NCBI RefSeq assembly: GCF_016433145.1
Contig: NC_058135.1
Span: 298,805,093 to 298,869,092, forward strand
Source of the DNA: Gracilinanus agilis
Taxonomy: Eukaryota
Length of the DNA stretch: 64,000 bases
Direction of reading: 5' to 3'
A program made the position numbers and the translations under genes. Shown here one piece after another: positions 1,671-57,166 of the stretch; position 1 is the stretch's first letter, and each line of letters begins with the position of its first letter. Under the pieces are notes generated by a model that worked only from the letters and a program-made list of their open reading frames with translations, made no database searches and was not told where the DNA came from.

Positions 1671-2866
1671 TCACCCCGCCTCCAGGGCCGGTGCCAGCCC
1701 GAGGGGAGAACGTGGAGCCAGCGTGGGCGGTCATGCATGTGGGGAAGGGGTCGGACCTCCGGCGTCCCGCCCGGCTTTGGCCCGCGGGCCCCCCACCGGC
1801 TCCGGCGGCCTCCCCAGAAGGCCCGGGCCTGCCGTCCTGGGGCCGCCGTGCACGCTGGGGCCGGGCCTCACCTCTCCGGTCCAGGGGCCGGCTAGCAGTC
1901 AGGCAGCTCGTGGCTCATCCAGGGTGATCGCACCCCGTCCCGTCACTCAGCTCCCCTCTGGCAGCCACAGAACTGGAGGGACATCCAGCCCCTCCGTCTT
2001 GGCCACCCGGGGGCTCCTGAACAATGGGGCACTAGGGAAGCCCCCCGAGTTCTAGAACCGGCCCCTGTGTGATGGCGACAATCGCCTCCTGGGGAGGGTT
2101 CCCTGCGGCCCTTGTCCGGGGGCTCCAGCCCGGGGCTGGCGGAGGGCGCGGGAGGAGAGGGAGCCCGGCCTCCCCTCACGCCGGCCTTCGTTGGCATCTC
2201 AGGCCTCACTCACGTCTGCCCCCGCCCCGTGGCTCGGGCTTTGTTCCTCTCACTCTGCTCCCGGCTCGGGGCCTCTGGAGGCGGGAAGACCCGGGACAGT
2301 GAGCGGCGCCGGAAGCCTCCCGTGCAGGCATAGCTCAGAGCTCAGGCCGAGGGGGGTTCAGGTGCTCTGGGGCCCCCCCGACCTTCCCCCTCAGCCCTGG
2401 GCCTGCCGGGTGCCCCATCTCCGGCCTGGCCGGGCCTCCCAGGAGGCTGCCGCTCCGTGCCCATCGGCCTGGGAGAAGGGGGGGAGGGACGGGACTTCTC
2501 GTGGAGTCCGCGGGGGCCCTGGCCGGAGTTCCAGTTCACATGAGAAGTGGGGTGCCGGTGGCGGGGTCTGTGCGGGGAGTCTGGCCTCCACCCCTGGGCC
2601 CCAGGTCCCGCCTCCCTTGCCGACCCCGACCCCGTGCCCGGTGGGAAGCGGGGGCCTCGCTCGGGCTCCTCTCTTGGGGGAAGACCCCGGGGCCCGCCGC
2701 CTCCCCATTTCCTCGCCGGCCCTGCTCCGAGTTCTCAACGCGTCGCCCGTCGGTGCCCGAGCGCGCCGGGCAGAGGCAGGTCTCGGAGGAGGCTCTCGGC
2801 GGCCCCATCCCCCCTCCGCAGCGAGGCCGGACAGAGGGACGGAGGCCGCCGAGAGCCCGCTGAGAC

Positions 2867-3549
<683 letters not shown>

Positions 3550-3619
3550 GGTGCACAGAGGGCTGGCCGGCCGCGCTGGGGTCCAGAAGTGGGAGTCGCA
3601 GCCAGCTGGCCGCCGAGGC

Positions 3620-3625
3620 TTTATG
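3620..3625 (-). promoter_or_regulatory. TATA-like box (CATAAA) of SCGB1C1
   Basis: ~70 bp upstream of the ATG in otherwise GC-rich sequence. Confidence 0.5.
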
Positions 3626-4224
3626 GGGACGGCGCTGCCCCCTCCCCACCCCCCGGGCCCTGGTGCCACGGGATTATCCTGTGGTTTGGCCAAAGGCGCC
3701 CGGGCCAGGGAGGGGGCAGGGCAAGGAGGACGGCGTGCCAGGTGGCCCCTGGGTGCCAGGAGAGGGAGGCAGGCGGAGCCGTGAGGGCCGGGTGCTGGGG
3801 GGGGCGGCTCCCTCCATCGCAGGCACGCAGTGGTTCTGCTCCTGCCAGGTTACTGGGGGGAGAGATGGCAGCGGTGGCGGCGAGTGGTCCGGTGCCCGAT
3901 CAGAGCAGGCCTGTGGCTGGGGGGGGCTCCCCTCTGGACACCCCCCAGAGCCTCCCCCAGAGGCGGCCCCCGGCCTGGCCATGAGCCTCTTTGGCTCCTG
4001 CTGCGAGGAAGATGGCTGGGAAGCCTTTCAGGAGGAGCCCCTGGATCCCCCCAGGCTGCCCCCTCTACTTTCTCCCCCATCTCCGAGCTGGGCACACCTT
4101 CCGTGTCTCTGGGTGGGATTTTCAGCCAATTTCACAGAGTGGGGGTGCTGAATAAATGCTCACTGCAGAAGTTCCCAAAGGACCCCCCCAGCCAGAAGCC
4201 CTGCTCAGGGACAGCTGCCAGTGC

Positions 4225-7590: not shown

Positions 7591-8808
7591 ACGTCATTTT
7601 GTTCTCGCTGTCAAGATGCCGCTAAAGCCTTTTACGGGCTGGAGATTTCCTCGGTGCTGCCTCTGCCCCCGTTCAGATCCTCCTCACCCCACAGCTGGCC
7701 CATTGCCGCAGCCTCTGCCTGCCTCAGTCTCTTCCCTCTCCAAAACGATTCTGCTGAAGTGCAGGTCTGAGCATGGCGGCCCTCCTCGCCATCCCTAATG
7801 GCTCCCTCTAGGCTCTCGGACCAACTAGGAAATGCCGCTTGGCATTCCAAGCCCCCCCCCCCTTTCCGGGCTTCTCATGCCTCACTGCCCAAGTAGTACC
7901 GTCTGAGCCAGGGACGTGGCCTCCGGGCACCCCAGGGCTGGGCTCTGGCTATTTCTCTGGCCGTCTCTCCTCCATCTCTGGAAAGCTGTTGTGCCTGGCG
8001 CCTCCTCCTCCAGGAAGCCCTGCTTTCTGCTCTTAGTTATCAATGATTATTTGCCCTGCTGAGAGCTTGCTTGGTGTCTGGCTGTTGTTTATATCCCCAG
8101 AGCCTGGCACGCAGTAGGGGCTTAACAGATGTTGATTCACTGATTGCTTGCTATATGTGCCAAAGGGTTACTTGGAAGAGCTGGAAAAAGGGAAGTCAGT
8201 CAAGCAAGTGGCTCCTTTTTGTTGCCCAGCGTGGGGGCTCCCGGGGACTGGGTGGGGGGAGGTTCTTGGCAAAGAGACTGCAGTGCTTTGCTGTTGCCTT
8301 TTCCAGCTCATCTGACAGATGAGGAAATGGAGGCAAAAAGAGTGCAGTGACTTGCCCAGGGTCACCGGGCTAGCAAGCGTCTGAGGTCAGATTTGGCTGC
8401 CTGCCCCCCTGCAGTACTGTGCTGGTGGGCTGTGACAGCAACCAGGAATCCTGGGAGTGAGGGGCAGCCAGGCCAAGGCACCCCTGGGGGGGAGGGCCCG
8501 GTTTCCTTCTGGCTACTCGGCCCACAAGCGACCCTGGCGGTGGCTCCCTTGGAGGAGACGGGAGGGGGGGAGCCAATGGACGGACAGCGGGACGGAGGAG
8601 AGCCGTGCTCCAGGGTCTGAAGGGCCGTCCTGGCCAAGGGGGCTTCCCTTTGTGCTCCTTGGCCACCCCGCCCCTCCCCGCGAGGCCGATTCCCAAAGGG
8701 TCCCGGGGAGGCCCCGCCTGCTTGTCGGCCTGCCTCTCCTCCAGGGTGGACAGTCCCTGGTTGGCGGGGTGGGCGGCGAGAAGACCCAATCGGCCTGCCT
8801 TTGGCCTT

Positions 8809-8881
8809 GTGCTCTGCTGCCCTCTGGTGGCCAGACCCCGCCCAGCAGGCTCGTCGGTGCTCTGCTGCCCTCTGGTGGCCA
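8809..8881 (-). promoter_or_regulatory. Two tandem CTCF motifs in a CpG-island-like segment
   Basis: 25-bp perfect direct repeat GTGCTCTGCTGCCCTCTGGTGGCCA at 8809-8833 and 8857-8881; reverse complement contains GGCCACCAGAGGGCAGC. Confidence 0.65.
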
Positions 8882-8974
8882 CTCCAACTCCGGAGATGCA
8901 AGTTAGCCAGCACAGGAGGCCAATGAAAGACAAAGGCCCGCCCCGCCCCCAGGCTCCCTGCTGAAGGAACAGCT

Positions 8975-9010
8975 CCAGGCCCAGGCCCAGGCCCAGGCCC
9001 AGGCCCAGGC
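8975..9010. repeat. (CCAGGC)6 hexamer repeat
   Basis: Read directly. Confidence 0.9.
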
Positions 9011-9839
9011 CAGAAGCGGGGGGCCCAAAGGCTGCCTCTCTCCTCACACGCCCTGCATGGAGCGGGGAGAGCTGAGGAAGCTCCAACCTTCTCAGGGCTC
9101 CAAGCGAGAGGCCCTCCCGGGGCCCCCCGCAGGACTCGGGTTGGCGCCTCCCCCTCGGAGGTCCTTTGGGTGCTCCTGGCTCCCGGCTTCCAGAGAGAAG
9201 ATGGAGGAGGCCGACCCCCCTTGATGTTGCTGCCGGGCAGACACAGGACAAGCCGGCAACCTCCATGGCTTCCCCCGGAGCCTTCGAGGGGCTTCCCTGG
9301 GGGGAGGGAGAGCCAAGACTGGCTCTCGCCTGCGCAGCCTCCTCTGACCTCCACTCTGCTGCCACTTAGATCACGGGATCTCGTCTCCGCCGTTGGCTCT
9401 GTGGGCCCGGGCAAGCCTCGCATCCAGAGCTTGGGGGCCTCTTTCCCCCCACAGTAGATGGTGCCGATCACGTCCCCCATGGATGGATGGAGGAAAGCTG
9501 CTTCTGGCGGTTCTCCCTCCCTCTGGGAAGAGCGCAGGAGCTTTCCCTTGTGGGAGGAGTTCGAGCGTCTCCCTTGGGGCGCACCCGGCAGGCCTTCCTC
9601 CCCGAGGGAGCTCCCTGCCTGCTGGCTCCCAGACTTGCCAGGTCTGGTTCTAGGTGTGGGGCACGGCCAGAGAAGATGCCCAGAGAGGCTCCGGCGGGGG
9701 GCTGACGAAGGGCCTTAAAGCCTCCATTTGGGCGGGAGCCGGGGCCGGGCACCTCCGCCTTTCTCTCCTGGCCTCATCAGACTGGCAGCTCCTTAAGGGC
9801 TGTGCCTGGCCCATCTGGCTCATCCTGGATTCAGCTCGG

Positions 9840-16530: not shown

Positions 16531-17391
16531 ATGCCGGAGCTGACGCTGGTGCCCCGGGCCCTCGTCTCCCTGGTGGGCCTCCTCCGGCTGCTCCAGGTGG
16601 TCCTGTGCTGTGTCACCTTCAGCCTGGCTGCCTCAGGCCCCAGCTTGGGCTCCCCATTCGGGGTGTGGTGTTTGTGCTCCTGGTGTCTCTGTTTCTTGCT
16701 GTCGCTGGCCATCTTGGTGCTGGAGCTCCTGGGCTTGGGGCCGCAGCTGCCGCTGTCCTGGGAGGACTTCACTTCGGCGGCAGCCATGCTAGCCACCTTG
16801 CTGACCTTCACCGCGTCCATCATGTATCCCAGCATCTTCGTACCAGAGGCCCCGAGCGGCTGGTCCCACACGGCGGCAGCCACGGCCACGGCCCTGTCCT
16901 GTGTGTGTTTCGTGACTTATGCGGTGGAGGTGGGGCTGACTCGGGCCAGGCCGGGGCAGCTCCGGGGCTTCCTGTCCACCGTGCCTGGCTTGCTGAAGGT
17001 GTTTGAAGCCTACGTGGCGTGTGTGATCCTGGCCCTGGTGGATGTGGACCACATGTATGCCGAGAACCCAGGGTGCCAATGGTGCATGGCTGTGTTCTGC
17101 CTCTGCTTTGGGATGGCCCTGCTGATCATCGGGCTCACCATAGGTCAGTGTCTGGGCTCCCTGCCGTGGCCCGTGGATCGCGTCCTCGTGGCCCTCACGG
17201 GCTTTGCTTCACTGCTCTACCTGTCAGCCGCCATCACGTGGCCCATCTTCATCTTCAAGTCACCCCGTTCCAGAGGTCGGTGGAAGAGCGCGGCGGTGGG
17301 AGCGACAGTCCTCACCTACGTCAACCTCCTGGCCTACGCGGCGGACCTCTTCTTCTCCAGCCGGATGGTGTTCCTCACGCAGTCCACATAG
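16531..17391 (+). CDS. Myeloid-associated differentiation marker family protein (MYADM/MYADML2-like paralog), single coding exon, 286 aa, two MARVEL domains
   Basis: Intact ORF with Kozak GGCACCATGC. Eight hydrophobic segments; motifs LRLLQ, LSWEDFTSAAAMLATLL, YAVEVGLTRARPG, VPGLLKVFEAYVAC, QWCMAVFCLCF, LLYLSAAITWP, TYVNLLAYAADL align to recalled MYADM/MYADML2. Confidence 0.9.
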   Translation: MPELTLVPRALVSLVGLLRLLQVVLCCVTFSLAASGPSLGSPFGVWCLCSWCLCFLLSLAILVLELLGLGPQLPLSWEDFTSAAAMLATLLTFTASIMYPSIFVPEAPSGWSHTAAATATALSCVCFVTYAVEVGLTRARPGQLRGFLSTVPGLLKVFEAYVACVILALVDVDHMYAENPGCQWCMAVFCLCFGMALLIIGLTIGQCLGSLPWPVDRVLVALTGFASLLYLSAAITWPIFIFKSPRSRGRWKSAAVGATVLTYVNLLAYAADLFFSSRMVFLTQST

Positions 17392-24410: not shown

Positions 24411-25731
24411 TTACTGGTAGTTGCTAGCTCTGTCTTTGGAAAAATCTATTTGCTTTCTAAATCTACAATTCTTAATCAAATGGCCAGGTCTGTTACATAA
24501 AAAACACTTTGGGACTTTGTTGTAAGATCTCTTTGGGTTGGAATAAGTTTCTTTTTTCTTAATTTCATGGTCTCTGGTTGTTTGCAACACAAAATTTCTA
24601 AATTCTTTTCTTTCTTTTTCCCTTCTGACTTCTTTCAGCTATCTTTTTAACTCCTGGATAGTTCTGTCCTTCTCTGAGTCTAACTCAGTCCTAATTTGTT
24701 GTTCCTTGCTTTTGGACTCATGAATATAGGTTGCATGCTTTCTAATGTCTTCTAGAGACAATTCTTCCCACTGTGGACAACTCTGTTTAAAATAGACTTG
24801 GAATTGGAATGCAAGTTCCCTTTATGAATTGGCACCTGATATGGGGTAGAGCTTCCTCAGATTGGTCTTTGTTAAAGCCTAGGAAATTTTCTGAATTTTC
24901 AATAAACCTGTCTAAAAACAAGCTAGGGTGCTCATCCTCAGCCTGCCTCATTTTTACAAACTTATTCCACCCATTAGGTCTTTTAGCATGTATTTTTACA
25001 GCCTCGAGTAAATCAGTTCTGCATTTCAAAAGTGCTTTCATATTTTCCGGTTCTGTCAAATCAATCACTTCATGCCCACATGGCCACAAAACCAAATTTG
25101 GGTTATCTCTTGTTTCAGCAATGAATTTGTCTTTTTCACTGGGGGTAAAGAATTCATCTAAAATAAATTCAGTGTCCTGGTAGGATGGATTAAAAAGGTT
25201 GAAGGTCCTTTTTAACTCCTTGGCTAATTTATATGGGGACAAGAAATATTTGGGGAACCTCCTCTTTAGCACCTCTAAATCTTGTGCAGTAAAAGCTTTG
25301 TATGTCTTCATGCTAACAGGTTCACCATTTGGTCTGAATTGGGTCTGATCTATAATCGGGAACAATGACACAGTGGTAAGGGCAATTGCTCCATTTTCAA
25401 TCTGGGTAGCCTCATTAATATCAAAATCAGTCTGGGTACAACTGTCCACCATCTTAGATCTTGGAGTTTCTTTGGCCTTAGGCTTGTATGCATTCTCTAT
25501 GATGTCTAGCTGTAAGATAGTATGTTCATCCAGTGCCTGTCCCTGCTTAATCTTACTATTGATTTCCACCATCAGCCTGAGCTGTTCCTTCATCACAGAA
25601 AACATATCTTCATTGTTTTGTTTGCCTTTCCCAAAGATCAATTGACTTATTTTCTTCACTGCCAAAATCCCTCGGATTGTTGTCACAAACATCACTACAA
25701 TTGCTGTTAAGTAGGACAGGAAATCTGCCAT
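24411..25731 (-). pseudogene. ERV gag: 314-aa open frame (25731-24787; TM segment, coiled coil, capsid) plus disrupted nucleocapsid tail
   Basis: ATG in strong Kozak (TTCACCATGG). Capsid-like YKAFTAQDLEVLK...FNPSYQD; MHR-like MRQAEDEHPSLFLDRF. After two frameshifts and one stop comes CCHC knuckle CFLCNRPGHLIKNC (24506-24465), then TAA at 24413-24411. Confidence 0.85.
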
Positions 25732-25802
25732 GGTGAATGCCAAGTACTTATAGGCATCATATGTTAGAATTTTTATAAAATAGTCTGAGATGACTTGTTT
25801 TG

Positions 25803-30104: not shown

Positions 30105-31052
30105 TCAGTCCCCCGGGCCCCCCAGCCTCCTTGCCACGGCCCTCCTGAGGGCAACTTTGACCTCCTTGTTTCTGAGGGTGTAGATGAGGGGGTTGAGCAG
30201 GGGCGTGATGGCCGTGTAGAGCACGGCCACCACGCGGTCCTGGGACAGGGTGTGTCTGGAGCGGGGGCGGAGGTACATGAAGCCAGCACAGCCGTAGTGG
30301 ATGACCACCACGGTCAGGTGCGCGGCGCACGTGGAGAAGGCCTTCCTGCGGCCCTCCCGGGAGCGGATGCGCAGCACGGCGGACGCGATGAGCACGTAGG
30401 AGAGGAGGGTGAGGGAGAAGCAGCCCAGGACCAGGAAGCCCGTCACGGCAAACAGGAGGAGCTCGTTGGTGCGCACGTCCGAGCAGGCCAGCTTGAGCAG
30501 GGGCGCGATGTCACAGAAGAAGTGCTGGACGCGCCGCCGGCCCCCGCAGAAGCTCACGCGGCTCATCATGGCCACGTGCAGCAGGGAGTGGAAGAAGCCC
30601 ACGGCCCAGACGAGGCCCGCCAGGCCCAGGCAGAGGGGCCGCGTCATGAGCAGCGGGTAGCGCAGAGGGTTGAAGATGGCCACGTAGCGGTCGAAGCCCA
30701 TGAGCGTGAGCAGCATCGCCTCGGTGCTGCCCAGGAAGTGGAAGAAGAACATCTGGGCCAGGCAGCCCCGCCGCGAGATGGCCCGGGCCGCCGCCAGGAG
30801 GTCGCCGAACATCTTGGGCACCGTGGTGGACGAGTAGAAGACGTCGATGAAGGACAGGATGCTGATGAAGAAGTACATGGGGGTGTGCAGCGGCCGCTCG
30901 CTCCAGATCACCAGCATGATGGCCACGTTCCCCGCCACGTTGGCCACGTAGATGAGCAGGAAGACGGCGAACAGCAGGGTCCGCAGGTCGGGGGCGTCGG
31001 AGAGCCCCAGCAGCAGGAACTCCGTGGCCAGCGTGCCGTTGCCCTCCTCCAT
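30105..31052 (-). CDS. Olfactory receptor, class II (family 12-like), intact 315 aa
   Basis: N-glycosylation site NGT; motifs LHTPMYFF, GSTEAMLLTLMGFDRYVAI, HFFCD, KAFSTCAAHL, PLLNPLIYTLRNKEVK; no lesions. Confidence 0.95.
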   Translation of the reverse strand: MEEGNGTLATEFLLLGLSDAPDLRTLLFAVFLLIYVANVAGNVAIMLVIWSERPLHTPMYFFISILSFIDVFYSSTTVPKMFGDLLAAARAISRRGCLAQMFFFHFLGSTEAMLLTLMGFDRYVAIFNPLRYPLLMTRPLCLGLAGLVWAVGFFHSLLHVAMMSRVSFCGGRRRVQHFFCDIAPLLKLACSDVRTNELLLFAVTGFLVLGCFSLTLLSYVLIASAVLRIRSREGRRKAFSTCAAHLTVVVIHYGCAGFMYLRPRSRHTLSQDRVVAVLYTAITPLLNPLIYTLRNKEVKVALRRAVARRLGGPGD

Positions 31053-44058: not shown

Positions 44059-44602
44059 AGTTAGGAAAAATTACAAAGTGTATAATAAATAATTTTCATT
44101 ACGTTAAATTAAAAAGTTTTTGTACAAACAAAAACAATGCAACCAAAATCAGAAGGGAAACAACAAACAGCGAAAAATTCTTTATAACAAAAAACTCTGA
44201 CAGAGATCAAATTACTCAAATAAACAGGGAGTTAAATCAATTGTATAAAAAATCAAACCATCCCCCAATTGATAAATGGGCAAGGGATGTAAATGGGCAA
44301 TCCTCAGATAAAGAAATCAAAAGTATCAATAAGCACATGAGACAGTGTTCTAAATCTCTAATAATTAGAGAAATGCAAATCAAAACAACTCTGAGGTACC
44401 ACCTCACACCTAGCAGATTGGCTAAAATGACAGCAGGGGAGAGTAATGAATGTTGGAGGGGATGTGGCAAAATTAGGACATTAATGCACTGCTGGTGGAG
44501 TTGTGAATTGATCCAACCATTCTGGATGGCAATTTGGAACTATGCACAAATAGCTCTAAAAGACTACCTGCCCTTTGATCCAGCTATACCATTGCTGGGT
44601 TT

Positions 44603-45660
44603 TGTAATGAACAATTCTTGACAAGCTTGCTTCTTTGTTTAATCATAGTAGGATAATTAGTAAACGTCAATCATATGATATTTCAAAAGTTAATGTGTAA
44701 TCTTTAATGTATGGGAAATCCAAAACCTGTATGAAATCATAATGAAAAAAGGGTATAAAAATAAAAATCAGCAGATGGCACCAGAGAACAGCCTCTGCAA
44801 TTTCACTTGCACCCTGGCTCATTTTCATTTTGTTTTGCCTTGCTGTTCCACCTCCAGAGAACACAGGGCAAAGAGCAGGCTCTTAGCTTACCGGCACTTT
44901 TAGAACAGGGACTCTTGGACACAGGTAAGACCCCCAAACCCCTCTCCCAAAAAAGCTGAGGATACTTCCAATTCGGATGGCTAAGGCCCTTGACCAAGGA
45001 ATTGCAAACCCTCACTACGGAAAGTGAGTCAGAATGGCAAGAAGATCAGAACTTTTAAGACCTCTGCCACACAAAAGACACTAGGATAGATAGCATGCTA
45101 AAGTAAATAGAAACTTTGGGAAACAGCAGATCAAAGGAAAGAAAACTTTATCGAAATCACTAAGCATACCCTAGAGAAGAGGGGAGTAAAAGTAAGCAAA
45201 CAGCAACTGGCAAAATACCTTAATTTTATCCAAATTTGCAGCCCTTGCTTTCCCAACAAAGGGACAGTGAATTCAGAAATCTAGGAGAAAAGTGGCCTTG
45301 ACCTGCTATGCAAAATATGGCCCAGAAAAAGTCCCTGTAGAGACCTTTTCTTTTTGGACTCTAATTAGGGATGCTTTAGATCCTGCCCATGAGGCTACTT
45401 GAATTGCACAATCTCTTACCAATATCACAGTTACTAAAAATATCCCCCTATTGCCTAGACAGAATTCTGATACTGGAATCATTAAGGCGTCAGTCTCAGA
45501 TCAAGATTCAAACAAGGAGAATGATGATGAGGATAGGCTTTTCTCTGATGAAGAGGCGCTGTCAGAAAAGGAGGTGGCAGCCTTTAACCCTGACTGGAAC
45601 TTTCCAGCATGAGTGAAAAAAACATCCTTCTGGCACCTGCTGTGCTAAACGTCACAGGCT
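44603..45660 (+). mobile_element. Betaretrovirus-like (ERV2) remnant: LTR 44603-44891, Lys3-type PBS 44892-44912, gag MA from 45116
   Basis: PBS retains GAACAGGGAC of TGGCGCCCGAACAGGGAC. Degenerate gag GNSRSKERK...RGVKVSKQQL...FPNKGTV...GPEKVPVETFSFWTLIRDALDP resembles betaretroviral p10 matrix; start codon is now TTG. Confidence 0.8.
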
Positions 45661-46080
45661 TTCATGGCTTCCCGCAGCTGTGTCCCGGGAGAGAGAAAGG
45701 AAGAAAGGGTTGGGAGGGAGGAGTGCCCAGAAATCCCTGCATTCCCAAGGTGCCTGGGCTGCTCTGGTCCAATAATAAGAACAGCAGCTCACTCTGATAA
45801 TGTCTCTGTGGGCAGATTTGGGGTGTTGGCAAAGATTTTTTTTCAGGATTCTCTGTCTAGTCCTGATGACTTGGAAGTTCCTCCAACATTGTGCTCTTCT
45901 GGAGGCAGCTCTTCCACTCGAGCCCTCAAGCCTCCACACCCCCAAGTGCCTCCAGCTGTCACCTTCTGAGTGGTGTGACCTGTCTCCTCCCGCCCTGCAG
46001 TGATTTGCTCCCAATCCGCTCACCCCACCCCAGACCTATTTCCAGCCTGCTAAAGTATAGAGAATGATCCTAAGTGGCCC
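45660..46080. mobile_element. Possible LTR
   Basis: LTR-like composition only. Confidence 0.3.
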
Positions 46081-47504
46081 TTCATCCCCCCTCCCCCCCA
46101 GCCTGGGCCTGTTAATGATCCATTGGCCCTCGGGGCCAACGAGGATGGGTGACCAAGCCCAGAAGCCCTCCTACCTGGGCAGGCCAGGGCCAGTGGGCAC
46201 CGACCCACAAATGCACCCAGGAATGCCCAGCAGTTAGGACCAGGGGCTCACAAGGTAGGGGAGGTTCAGCATGATGGGCACAGCGGGACACTAATTCCGA
46301 CGCGGCTAGTGCTCCAGGTTTTGCTTCCTCCCATTCCGGGAAAATCGAATTTAGGGTGAGGGTTACACAGCTGGCTACTTTGTTGCCCAAGTGGATACAC
46401 GATGTTCCATTCCCCTTCCCCCAGCACCAGAGCCCACCTGCAGCAGCCCCCAGCTAGCCCTGCCCTCCACTTGGCCCCCCAGGGAAGACTGAAAGTTCCT
46501 GGAGGCTGGGGCGCCACGATATGAGGGGACAGGTTTCCCAGAGGGTGAGGTTTAGCACCCTCAGAGTGGGGGGAAGGGGATCAGCCCACCCTCCCAATGC
46601 CCCTCTTGTCCCTGAGCTCTTTGGCAATCTGCACCTTCTGATGGCTATTGGTGAACCTTTTGGCCCAGTCCCATCTGCACTTCAGAAAGGATAAGTAGAG
46701 GCAGGGGAGCTGGTGCTTCTGAGGGAAATGCCCCAGGGGTCCCTGGACTGCTAGCCTCATTTTGATTAATCCATCTTGGATCAAACTAATTTGGGGAGCA
46801 CAAGGGGCCTGGGGCCACTTAGAGAAGTCTCTAAAGGAGAAAGGCGTCCAGCCTAGAGGAGGTGACCCTGGATTTTCTGGGAGCTGCCCTCCAGCTGGGG
46901 AAGTTCTTCTGGGAACAAGGAGAAAGGGGTATTGCAGAGCCTTGAGGCCTTCTCCCCTAGGAAAGGATGCTAAGGGCTAACACAAAGCCAGAATCCATGG
47001 ACACCCAGGGCAGCACTCTAGAGCCCAAGATGGCCCTTGGCTCTTGGGGATCCTGGCCTTGGCCTGAAAAAGGAGGTCTTTGAGAGGTGGGGTCCCCCTC
47101 AAGAACTGGCTAGTCAGCCACGATTTAGGGATCTCTTGTCTCAGATAGAGTAGATGGGGAGCCCCCAATTGAATGGGTGGAGACTTTATTTAGTGAGGAT
47201 GCCCAAGGGCAGAGAGAATTGCCCCCCACTGACACACACCTCACTGTCTTCCCTCAGAACTGCCCAAGCTAGGGGTGATGATGCTTCATGAATACAATTG
47301 GTTCTGACCTTAGGGTCTCTGAAGGGCTGCCCCTTATAGGCGAGAATTAGCCTTGTCCTGCTCATCCCCAGGGTAGGGAGGCCATCTGGACAGCCCTTCG
47401 GATGGGGAGGGGAGAGGGGTTGATGGGGTCCCTCCTGCTCTCATAGGCCCTTCCTCTGCCATTCTTGCCCTTCCCACTGGTGACCAGACAGGTGCTGAGA
47501 CACA

Positions 47505-48057
47505 ATGCTGTACAAATTAGTGGTGTTAGGCAGCTGTGCCGTGGGCAATAATGCATTGACCATCCAGCTGGTCGAGAACTGCTTTGTCCCCAACTGATCC
47601 CATCAAAGACTCCTACAGCATCCAGCTGGTGGTGGATGGGGAGCCCTGCCAGCTGGACATCCTGGACACCACAGGCAACAAGGAGTGCCAGTCCCTCAGC
47701 CATGAGTCCATGCGCCTCTGGTATGGATTCCTCCCTATCTATGCTGTGGATGACACCAAATCCTTTATGGACATGAACATCTGGGACCAGCTGTGCAGGA
47801 TCAGACATCGACCATGTTCCCGTAGTCCTGGTGCCCAACAAGACAAACAAGCCTGGTGACCTGGGACCTGTGCCAGGAGGCAACCAAGAGCTTCAAGGTG
47901 CCCTTGGTGGAGACATCGGCCAAAACCAGGTCCGCTGTGGAGCACGCCTTTCAGGAGCTGGTGCGAGATTCACTGCTTCAGCTTCCAGGAGCACAAACAC
48001 TGCCGAAATACTGAGCATAACCAAGGCTGCAGGTTCAAACCTTGCAAGGTAATGTGA
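47505..48057 (+). pseudogene. Intronless Ras-family pseudogene (at least four frameshifts)
   Basis: YKLVVLGSCAVGNNALTIQL, DP-IKDSY, VVDGEPCQLDILDTTG, VPVVLVPNK, VETSAKTR, VEHAFQELVR, C-terminal CKVM-stop; no introns at the canonical HRAS positions. Confidence 0.9.
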
Positions 48058-48912
48058 GACAGTGCCTACACCAGAATCTCCCAGGAGCCCCTGGCTGCAT
48101 CTCCTAAGCATTTCTCCACCCAGGCTTTTCAGATTTTTATTTTTCCCTTTGAGAAGGAATGACTCCGAGTGACCAGCCCAGAGAAGATGCCCACCCACCC
48201 TCCTCCCCAACCTCTCTTCCCCATCCCTCACCATCCTCCTCAGCAGTCTCCTCTCCCCTCCTGTCTGGGCTGGAAAGGGGGGCTTTTTTCTCCCACTTTC
48301 CTACTCTGATTCAAAGGCCACTGTTTTTCTTGTTCTAAGATTGATCAGAAATCAAGGTTGTTGGTTTCTTTATAAGTGTATTGCTGGTGATTTCTTGGGG
48401 GACTCTTCTGAGAGCCCCTCAGGGAAATAGGGTCTTTATCAGGATACCATCAAAATCAATGTAAACCCTGTTTTAATTCTTGTGGCCTGAAAATGGGGCC
48501 ACAGGATGGATGGATTACCCAATCAGACCCCTCTGTGTGACTCTCTTTTGACCAACACTTTTTATTATTGAAATTATAATCTATATTTTTAAGATAGCCT
48601 CAAATTTTGTAATATAGATATAAAATCCCCTAAAAAATTCCCTTTATATAAATCCCCTAATTAAATAATAAACCAGCATTTAACAAGTTAATAGCTTAGA
48701 CCATACCCTCAATAAAAGAGCAGAAGCTGCTTTCATCTTTTCCTCTCTGTCTCAAGAGTATGAAGGACACAGTATGGCATTTCCAAAAAAAAAATATTCT
48801 CAATGGATGACTTTCTCATGCTGAGTTTAACCTGAGGAACTTAAACGTTCTCATGCTTTAACCACTTTTGAAATATGTTGAAGGTTCTTTTTATTAAAAT
48901 ATAACTTACATA

Positions 48913-49100
48913 GGGGGAGCTGGGTAGCTCGGTGGAGTGAGAATCAGGCCTAGAAACAGGAGCTCCTAGGTTCAAACCCGGCCTCAGCCACTTCCCAGCT
49001 GTGTGACCCTGGGCAAGTCACTTGACCCCCATTGCCCACCCTTACCAATCTTCCACCTATGAGACAATACACCGAAGTACAAGGGTTAAAAAAATATATT
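48913..49100 (+). mobile_element. SINE1_Mdo-type SINE
   Basis: 11-bp TSD TAACTTACATA (48902-48912 / 49101-49111). Confidence 0.95.
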
Positions 49101-49863
49101 TAACTTACATAAAGGAGGGTGTTCTGATAGCCTGGAAGACTGTTTAGACTAGGTATAATCTATATGTAGAAATACATTTTGTGTGCCAACTTTTATGTAA
49201 CTGGCATAACCTTGAACTCTTTTCTGTTTGGGTTTGAAATGTAAATTTTCCCAGAAGTTATATGACTGAGAGAGAAAGGTATAAAAAAAATCAAGATTTC
49301 CAGAAACTTCTCAAAATAGTTTCCAGAAATCCACTGTCTCTGACTCTCTCTTTCTTTCTAAACTGTCACACCTCTCAAGATAACTAGATCTGCTTGCTGG
49401 CTTCCAGCAGGGGTCTTCTGTTTGGAATTGGAATAACGGGAGTGCTGTGTAGCCCAGTGTCCTTATATGAAAGATGTAGGGAGTTGGAGGAGGATTTCAG
49501 GTAACGTCCAACTCTAGGATTTATTTCTGTTGTTAAATTGAAATCCTATGAAACCCTGGCTTCTGGAACCCGAGTTTCCTTATCTGTGAAATGGGAATAT
49601 TGACACCTGATTCACCTGGCTTTGGTCAGGCTAAGTAAGACGTTACACATATATAGAGGAAATTCTTTAGTGACCTGGAAGCCTGGTAACAGTCATTACT
49701 GGTCCCTTTGTAAATAACTAAGGTCCTAGAGAATCGAATGAAAAAATAGTTGAAATAATTAGTAAAGTTGAAGGACATAAAATATATCCATCTAAATCAT
49801 TGGCATTTCTACATAATATCAAAAAAGGTCAGCAGCAGAGAAATCCTGTTTAAAATAACTATA

Positions 49864-50010
49864 GGGGCAGCTGGGTGGCTCAGAGGATTGAGTCAAGCCT
49901 AGAGACAGGAGGTCCTACGTTCAAATCTGGCCTCAGACACTTCCTAGCTGTGTGAACCTGGGCAAGTCATTTGACCCCCATTACCTAGCCCTTACCACTC
50001 TTCCGGTATC
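49864..50010 (+). mobile_element. SINE
   Basis: GGGGCAGCTGGGTGGCTCAG...GGCAAGTCATTTGACCCCCATT. Confidence 0.85.

Positions 50011-51148: not shown

Positions 51149-57166
<6,018 letters not shown>

Follow-up and report, generated by a model that had tools for sequence, protein, structure and literature searches.

The locus and its surroundings

The window, as we call the whole stretch of 64,000 nucleotides analysed here (Gracilinanus agilis, NCBI RefSeq assembly GCF_016433145.1, contig NC_058135.1, positions 298,805,093 to 298,869,092 of the forward strand), carries the remains of a Ras-subfamily gene. The features recognised in it, in order along the window, are the following.

16531-17388, plus strand: MARVEL/MYADM-like gene, intact, 286 aa (P0267)
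24787-25740, minus strand: gag remnant; weak Gag_p30 match (E 1.3e-4), below the Pfam cut-off
30108-31052, minus strand: olfactory receptor, intact, 315 aa, Pfam 7tm_4 E 1.5e-57; lies in a very GC-rich stretch; annotated product
44400-44600: 3'-end fragment of L1 ORF2, upstream of the GC-rich block; identified by eye, with no repeat library
~45600-48400: GC-rich non-repeat block enclosing the relic
47505-48057, plus strand: Ras-subfamily relic
~48915-49060 and ~49860-50010: elements recognised by eye, which we take to be tRNA-derived marsupial-type SINEs, in AT-rich sequence downstream of the GC-rich block
51149-51925, minus strand: C2H2 zinc-finger array reading frame, zf-H2C2_2 E 3e-54; ~3 kb downstream of the relic

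The gag reading frame is the remnant of an endogenous retrovirus, ~22 kb upstream of the relic, and the C2H2 reading frame resembles the terminal exon of a gene of KZNF type. The MYADM-like protein has a Monodelphis counterpart, XP_056659529.1, in the same 90%-identity cluster. Positions 1-22000 of the window have a GC content of 56-73% and hold many long, overlapping reading frames on both strands, for example 2547-4151 on the plus strand (534 aa) and 8362-9480 on the minus strand (372 aa). No Pfam match was found for these long frames, which are probably artefacts of the base composition, or else exons not recognised as such. Among the ten long reading frames scanned across the 64-kb window there is none for HDAC6, PCSK1N, DLC1 or TRMT9B, and the window holds no second Ras copy.

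Three-frame translation resolves the relic into five colinear pieces that together span 553 bp, with no intron-sized gap between them.

47505-47594, plus strand: piece 1, frame 0; start codon and residues 1-30, MLYKLVVLGSCAVGNNALTIQLVENCFVPN; P-loop GSCAVGNN; Pfam Ras E 0.004
47595-47597, plus strand: first break; in-frame TGA produced by a deletion of ~2 nt inside the Tyr32 codon, with the Thr35 codon missing just downstream
47596 to ~47808, plus strand: piece 2, frame +1; DPIKDSY...DILDTTGNKEC...AVDDTKSF...RIRH, comprising the switch I remnant DP-IKDSY, beta2-beta3 and G3/switch II; Pfam Ras E 1.6e-9
~47810-47849, plus strand: piece 3, frame +2; DHVPVVLVPNKTNK; G4 motif NKxD decayed to NKTN (D119N)
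~47850-47969, plus strand: piece 4, frame 0; LVTWDLCQEATKSFKVPLVETSAKTRSAVEHAFQELVRD; G5 motif SAK retained; Pfam Ras E 1.7e-4
47971-48054, plus strand: piece 5, frame +1; HCFSFQEHKHCRNTEHNQGCRFKPCKVM; hypervariable region, upstream Cys and CaaX box CKVM
48055-48057, plus strand: TGA stop codon closing piece 5

Set against its intact relatives, the relic shows four frame-shifting deletions, at ~47595, ~47808, ~47850 and ~47966. The Pfam Ras family (PF00071) matches three of the five pieces. The two larger pieces are matched by PDB chains of H/K/NRAS, with E values of ~2e-16 and ~1e-5; these are the best matches in the PDB, which contains no MgRas protein (the marsupial family described below). 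Judged from these scores, the Ras identity of the relic is far beyond chance.

Aligned with HRAS, the P-loop of the relic reads G10 S11 C12 A13 V14 G15 N16 N17 and its switch II region reads D57 T58 T59 G60 N61 K62 E63 C64. Towards the C-terminus the relic keeps ETSAK, and its CaaX box, CKVM, is preceded by a cysteine eight residues upstream. A sequence-only reading of this DNA had described an intronless Ras relic with C12, A13, T59 and N61 that preserved the effector remnant DP-IKDSY, ETSAK and a CKVM box with an upstream Cys, and both descriptions are borne out by the HRAS alignment and the three-frame translation, the Thr35 codon being absent from the effector remnant.

Membership of the MgRas family

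Marsupial gonad Ras, or MgRas, has been described by Petrohilos et al., Mol Biol Evol 2026 (PMC12866920), as a marsupial-specific family of single-exon genes encoding proteins of 155-390 aa, almost exclusively expressed in the gonad and falling into three clades. Most of the genes sit in a cluster close to DLC1 and TRMT9B; some species also have a few orphan copies, and the family has expanded by tandem duplication (PMC12866920). The grey short-tailed opossum has two of them, from clades A and C (PMC12866920). Judged from the ten long reading frames scanned in the 64-kb window, the relic is not in the DLC1/TRMT9B setting; linkage over a longer distance is possible.

To find relatives of the relic, 1.84 billion representative proteins were scanned with HMMER, profile-free, the longest unbroken piece of the relic serving as query. 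The useful matches were two marsupial proteins, P0003 and P0017; their identity is 57-58%, and they have the unusual motifs of the relic. The top-scoring entries, P0001 and P0002, together with P0004, were set aside: they are gene predictions with a tandem-duplicated Ras domain, which is matched twice and inflates the score, and are probably annotation artefacts. A word search with P0017 then gave 34 intact marsupial proteins titled 'NRas-like' or 'ras-like', from the genera Trichosurus, Petaurus, Monodelphis, Gracilinanus, Sminthopsis, Antechinus, Sarcophilus, Dromiciops, Vombatus and Phascolarctos. Intact paralogs are present in at least 11 marsupial species, and one of them, P0159, lies within the Gracilinanus agilis assembly GCA_016433145.1.

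With an X written at every break so that the relic reads as one protein, its closest intact relative is P0159, 'GTPase NRas-like [Gracilinanus agilis]', at 66% identity. It is followed by P0162 of Monodelphis domestica at 64% and by the Dromiciops and Trichosurus orthologs at 57%, with H/K/NRAS at only 44-47%. The last six residues of the relic, KPCKVM, are those of P0159. In a maximum-likelihood tree (IQ-TREE) the relic groups with P0159 and P0162 with support of 100/98, and a clade of seven rows, in which each species is represented by a single gene, is supported at 99/95. The marsupial genes, with the relic among them, form a group apart from canonical Ras (100/100) in this tree, which takes in no ERAS or further Ras-subfamily gene. 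From the species table of the published study we infer that the branch formed by P0162, P0159 and the Dromiciops gene is its clade C (PMC12866920). A position of the relic basal to P0159 plus P0162 is weakly supported (95/55) and could reflect long-branch attraction, the terminal branch of the relic being 0.38. This is 4-5 times the length of those of the intact didelphid genes, as is expected of neutral decay. The gene just upstream of P0162 in Monodelphis has a 664-aa product with a weak SWIB match and a RING domain (zf-C3HC4_3), a domain pair like that of MDM2/MDM4.

How much of the peculiarity of the relic is decay, and how much was inherited? The relic departs from four of the 26 columns that are invariant across 42 intact Ras and MgRas proteins, K16N and D119N among them, and differs at 11 of the 52 columns conserved in MgRas, including the loss of T35 and G75W. 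Membership of the family was scored as at least four of the five G boxes (GxxxxGK[ST], T, DxxG, [TN]KxD and [CS]A[KLT]). The relic has two of them, G3 (DTTG) and G5 (SAK), and so falls short of that number: G1 is without K16 and S17, T35 of G2 is deleted, and G4 reads NKTN. Nor does it offer the open frame, with start and stop, to which the published catalogue is confined (PMC12866920), given its four frameshifts and one in-frame TGA, and these breaks make it a pseudogene of the MgRas family rather than a working member. With K16, S17, T35 and D119 lost and four frame-shifting deletions gained, the relic cannot make a GTPase. N16, N17, N119 and the loss of T35 are decay specific to the relic. 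The residues C12 and A13 in its P-loop are, in contrast, of the family type.

The relic probably split from the functional didelphid gene around or before the divergence of Gracilinanus and Monodelphis. C12, T59 and N61 were inherited from a working parent; the four frame-shifting deletions and the losses of K16, S17, T35 and D119 came after the split.

We conclude that the relic is, with high probability, a unitary, non-functional pseudogene, and a dispersed duplicate that belongs to the didelphid branch of MgRas, the single-exon family specific to marsupials. The family is already known, and the relic is an ordinary pseudogene of it. On its own it changes nothing; its value is as a pointer to the family. 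It does tell us that the didelphid MgRas lineage has dispersed at least one copy to a site away from the cluster already known, and that this copy is now dead. The open-frame rule leaves relics such as that at 47505-48057 outside the published catalogue, implying that copy counts that list open frames only understate the turnover of MgRas genes.

Alternative readings and the origin of the copy

Independent DNA bears on the breaks in the frame. A public DNA data set, X1, contains 55% of the sampled words of the stretch. One X1 contig spans 47430-47628 and crosses the first break without a gap, and another is identical to the window over 47885-48037, last frameshift included; the sharing of the first and last breaks implies that at least two of the breaks are real. 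One X1 contig has AAG (Lys16) at 47547-47549, where the window has AAT (Asn16), and two or three have 2 extra bases behind 47964-47966, the site of the last frameshift. X1 also has contigs that diverge by ~10% over the 3' half, and a gap of 117 bp (47733 to 47851) interrupts one of these; further close copies of the relic, or very divergent haplotypes of it, therefore exist.

The contigs with Lys16 and with the 2 extra bases count in favour of a functional MgRas gene whose frame has been broken only by assembly or sequencing errors. This reading is nevertheless highly improbable, since it would have to account for four separate frameshifts and, at sites conserved in the family, for a missing T35 codon together with D119N, G75W and further changes, and for a terminal branch 4-5 times longer than in intact didelphid genes, and since X1 itself reproduces the first break and the last frameshift. 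An even slighter probability attaches to a processed pseudogene of canonical HRAS, KRAS or NRAS mRNA that has drifted far. Such a retrocopy would share with the relic its lack of introns and its CaaX end, and canonical Ras chains are the best matches of the relic in a PDB devoid of MgRas. Against this stand the lower identity to canonical Ras than to didelphid MgRas (64-66%), the fully supported separation of the marsupial clade, relic included, from canonical Ras, and the family-specific motifs GSC-VG, DTTGN, AVDD-KSF, QAFQELVR and GC-FKPCKVM. A third reading, a marsupial ortholog of eutherian ERAS that has decayed in place at the ancestral locus, draws on the single exon and the non-glycine residue at position 12, and the published tree does place MgRas next to eutherian ERas (PMC12866920). 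It was set aside, and is likewise of very low probability: the relic lies between MYADM-like, olfactory receptor, gag and C2H2 zinc-finger sequences, and HDAC6 and PCSK1N, which flank ERAS in eutherians, are missing from the ten long reading frames scanned; in a tree that contains no ERAS sequence, the relic groups within the didelphid part of MgRas, next to an intact paralog; and ERas was not found in the Tasmanian devil, the sole marsupial searched for that gene (PMC12866920).

Accepting a didelphid MgRas parent, the manner in which the copy reached its present site is more evenly balanced. No poly(A) tract occurs within ~700 bp of the relic, the nearest A-run being an A10 at 48786-48795, ~730 bp past the stop codon. 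No convincing target-site duplication was found around it either; the sole flanking 14-mer pair, at 47060/48483 (13 of 14 matching), has no preceding A-rich tract and is, by rough estimate, at chance level. Both absences favour a DNA-level event, whether segmental or ectopic duplication or the separation of the locus from an MgRas cluster to which it was ancestrally linked, as do the extension of the GC-rich non-repeat block ~1.9 kb upstream of the ATG, the tandem duplication known in the family (PMC12866920), and the location of the MYADM-like counterpart and both MgRas genes of Monodelphis on one and the same 311-Mb record. In Gracilinanus, on the other hand, the relic is a solitary dispersed copy, P0159 being on another chromosome record, and no neighbour was duplicated along with it. 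The parents are intronless and germline-expressed (PMC12866920), which makes them ideal substrates for L1, and at the age of the relic erosion would in any case have removed a poly(A) tail and target-site duplications. Retroposition of a germline-expressed, intronless mRNA and duplication at the DNA level are about equally likely, with a slight lean to retroposition on priors only, so that a DNA-level origin has not quite an even chance.

Several expectations of the sequence-only reading can be judged against these results. It had held the relic to be too divergent for a simple H/K/NRAS retrocopy, as the identities (44-47% against 66% to P0159) and the 100/100 split in the tree confirm. It had noted the absence of an adjacent poly(A) tail, which the distance to the nearest A10 upholds, and had suggested a duplicate of an established single-exon gene with intact paralogs elsewhere, now found in at least 11 species. 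Its caveat that N16 and N17 might postdate inactivation was well placed, both being decay specific to the relic.

Hydrolysis residues in the intact family and comparison with known Ras systems

Are the oncogene-type residues of the relic peculiar to a dead gene? The 34 intact marsupial proteins answer that they are not. Glycine is found at position 12 in one of the 34, where the residue is mostly cysteine (21) or serine (7), and at position 13 again in one, mostly replaced by cysteine (21); no protein has glycine at both. Threonine occupies position 59 in 28, and alanine in one. Glutamine at position 61 is not found in any of the 34, this being the second most variable site of the G domain. 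The nucleotide-binding residues present a very different picture, with G10, G15, K16, D57, N116, K117, D119, S145 and A146 each retained in 34 of 34. The effector-loop residues Y32, P34, T35, D38 and Y40 are kept in 31-32 of the 34, positions 36, 37 and 39 being more variable, and the cysteine of the CaaX box in 31. Since non-G12, non-G13, T59 and non-Q61 are common to the intact relatives, they are traits of the family and not products of decay. The sequence-only reading had named a lack of intact paralogs, or G12, A59 or Q61 in them, as evidence that would speak against it; intact paralogs exist and, as tabulated, 33 of the 34 are without G12, 33 without A59 and all 34 without Q61, so that its interpretation is supported, constitutive activity being a prediction from sequence.

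Side chains at positions 12 and 13, and the loss of Gln61, block GAP-assisted hydrolysis, as is established in Ras biochemistry, and Thr59 is the residue that is autophosphorylated in viral Ras. G12 and Q61 mutants of H/K/NRAS, and ERAS, have been found by experiment to be GAP-insensitive and mostly GTP-bound. In the intact MgRas proteins the residues that serve intrinsic as well as GAP-assisted hydrolysis of GTP, G12, G13 and Q61, are replaced while the motifs for nucleotide binding, effector contact and lipidation have been conserved, a pattern that would yield a membrane-anchored Ras that is insensitive to GAPs and mostly GTP-bound, as ERAS and the G12/Q61 mutants are. By this analogy, the intact MgRas proteins are most likely GAP-insensitive, largely GTP-bound and membrane-anchored. 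Taking the residue pattern across the genes further, we think it rather probable that the whole family, including its dasyurid and bandicoot expansions, is natively 'pre-activated', that it is controlled by gonad-restricted transcription and not by a GTPase cycle, and that it forms a marsupial counterpart to ERAS.

That catalytic residues are replaced throughout the family while nucleotide binding is kept is possibly a new point: the main text of the published study makes no mention of G12, Q61 or constitutive activity (PMC12866920). That study proposed that more MgRas copies provide more targets for activating mutation (PMC12866920), an idea that would be recast if the genes are already pre-activated. 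If GAP-insensitivity is true, the question moves from Ras mutation targets in cancer-prone dasyurids to the silencing, outside the gonad, of dozens of Ras genes that are already activated.

Comparison with known systems places the relic closest to MgRas itself, whose members go under NCBI titles such as 'GTPase NRas-like' or 'ras-like protein' (P0159 and P0162, for example). It shares with them a marsupial genome, a single coding exon, the Ras-subfamily fold and a place in the didelphid branch, together with the non-glycine residues at 12 and 13, T59, the non-glutamine residue at 61, the motifs AVDD-KSF and GC-FK-C-aaX, and the identical KPCKVM end. It differs from them in the four breaks in its frame and in the disappearance of K16, S17, T35 and D119, and from the main MgRas cluster in being, within 64 kb, a lone copy among MYADM-like, olfactory receptor and zinc-finger genes. 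The processed pseudogenes of KRAS and HRAS are, like the relic, intronless and away from their parental locus, but they are near-identical to canonical Ras, whereas the relic has less than half of its residues in common with it and belongs to another clade. A single-exon KRas4B duplicate has been reported in opossum (PMC12866920).

The viral and tumour forms of Ras, among them v-H-ras (G12R and A59T), v-K-ras (G12S and A59T), KRAS G12C and the Q61 mutants, are altered at the same positions as MgRas, with a residue other than glycine at 12, threonine at 59 or a residue other than glutamine at 61. The difference is one of origin: the changes in these proteins are somatic or viral, whereas those of MgRas are germline-encoded, ancient and common across species, the copy in the window being dead.

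Finally, the literature describes ERAS as an atypical Ras with constitutive activity (PMC8834437). Like MgRas, it is a single-exon gene of the Ras subfamily with a deviant residue at position 12 and a restricted expression of early or germline type, and these likenesses suggest it as the best functional analogy for the intact MgRas family. In its catalytic residues human ERAS would differ from MgRas: it keeps A59 and Q61, whereas 28 of the 34 intact MgRas proteins have T59 and none has Q61. It also has a long N-terminal extension and an X-linked position between HDAC6 and PCSK1N.
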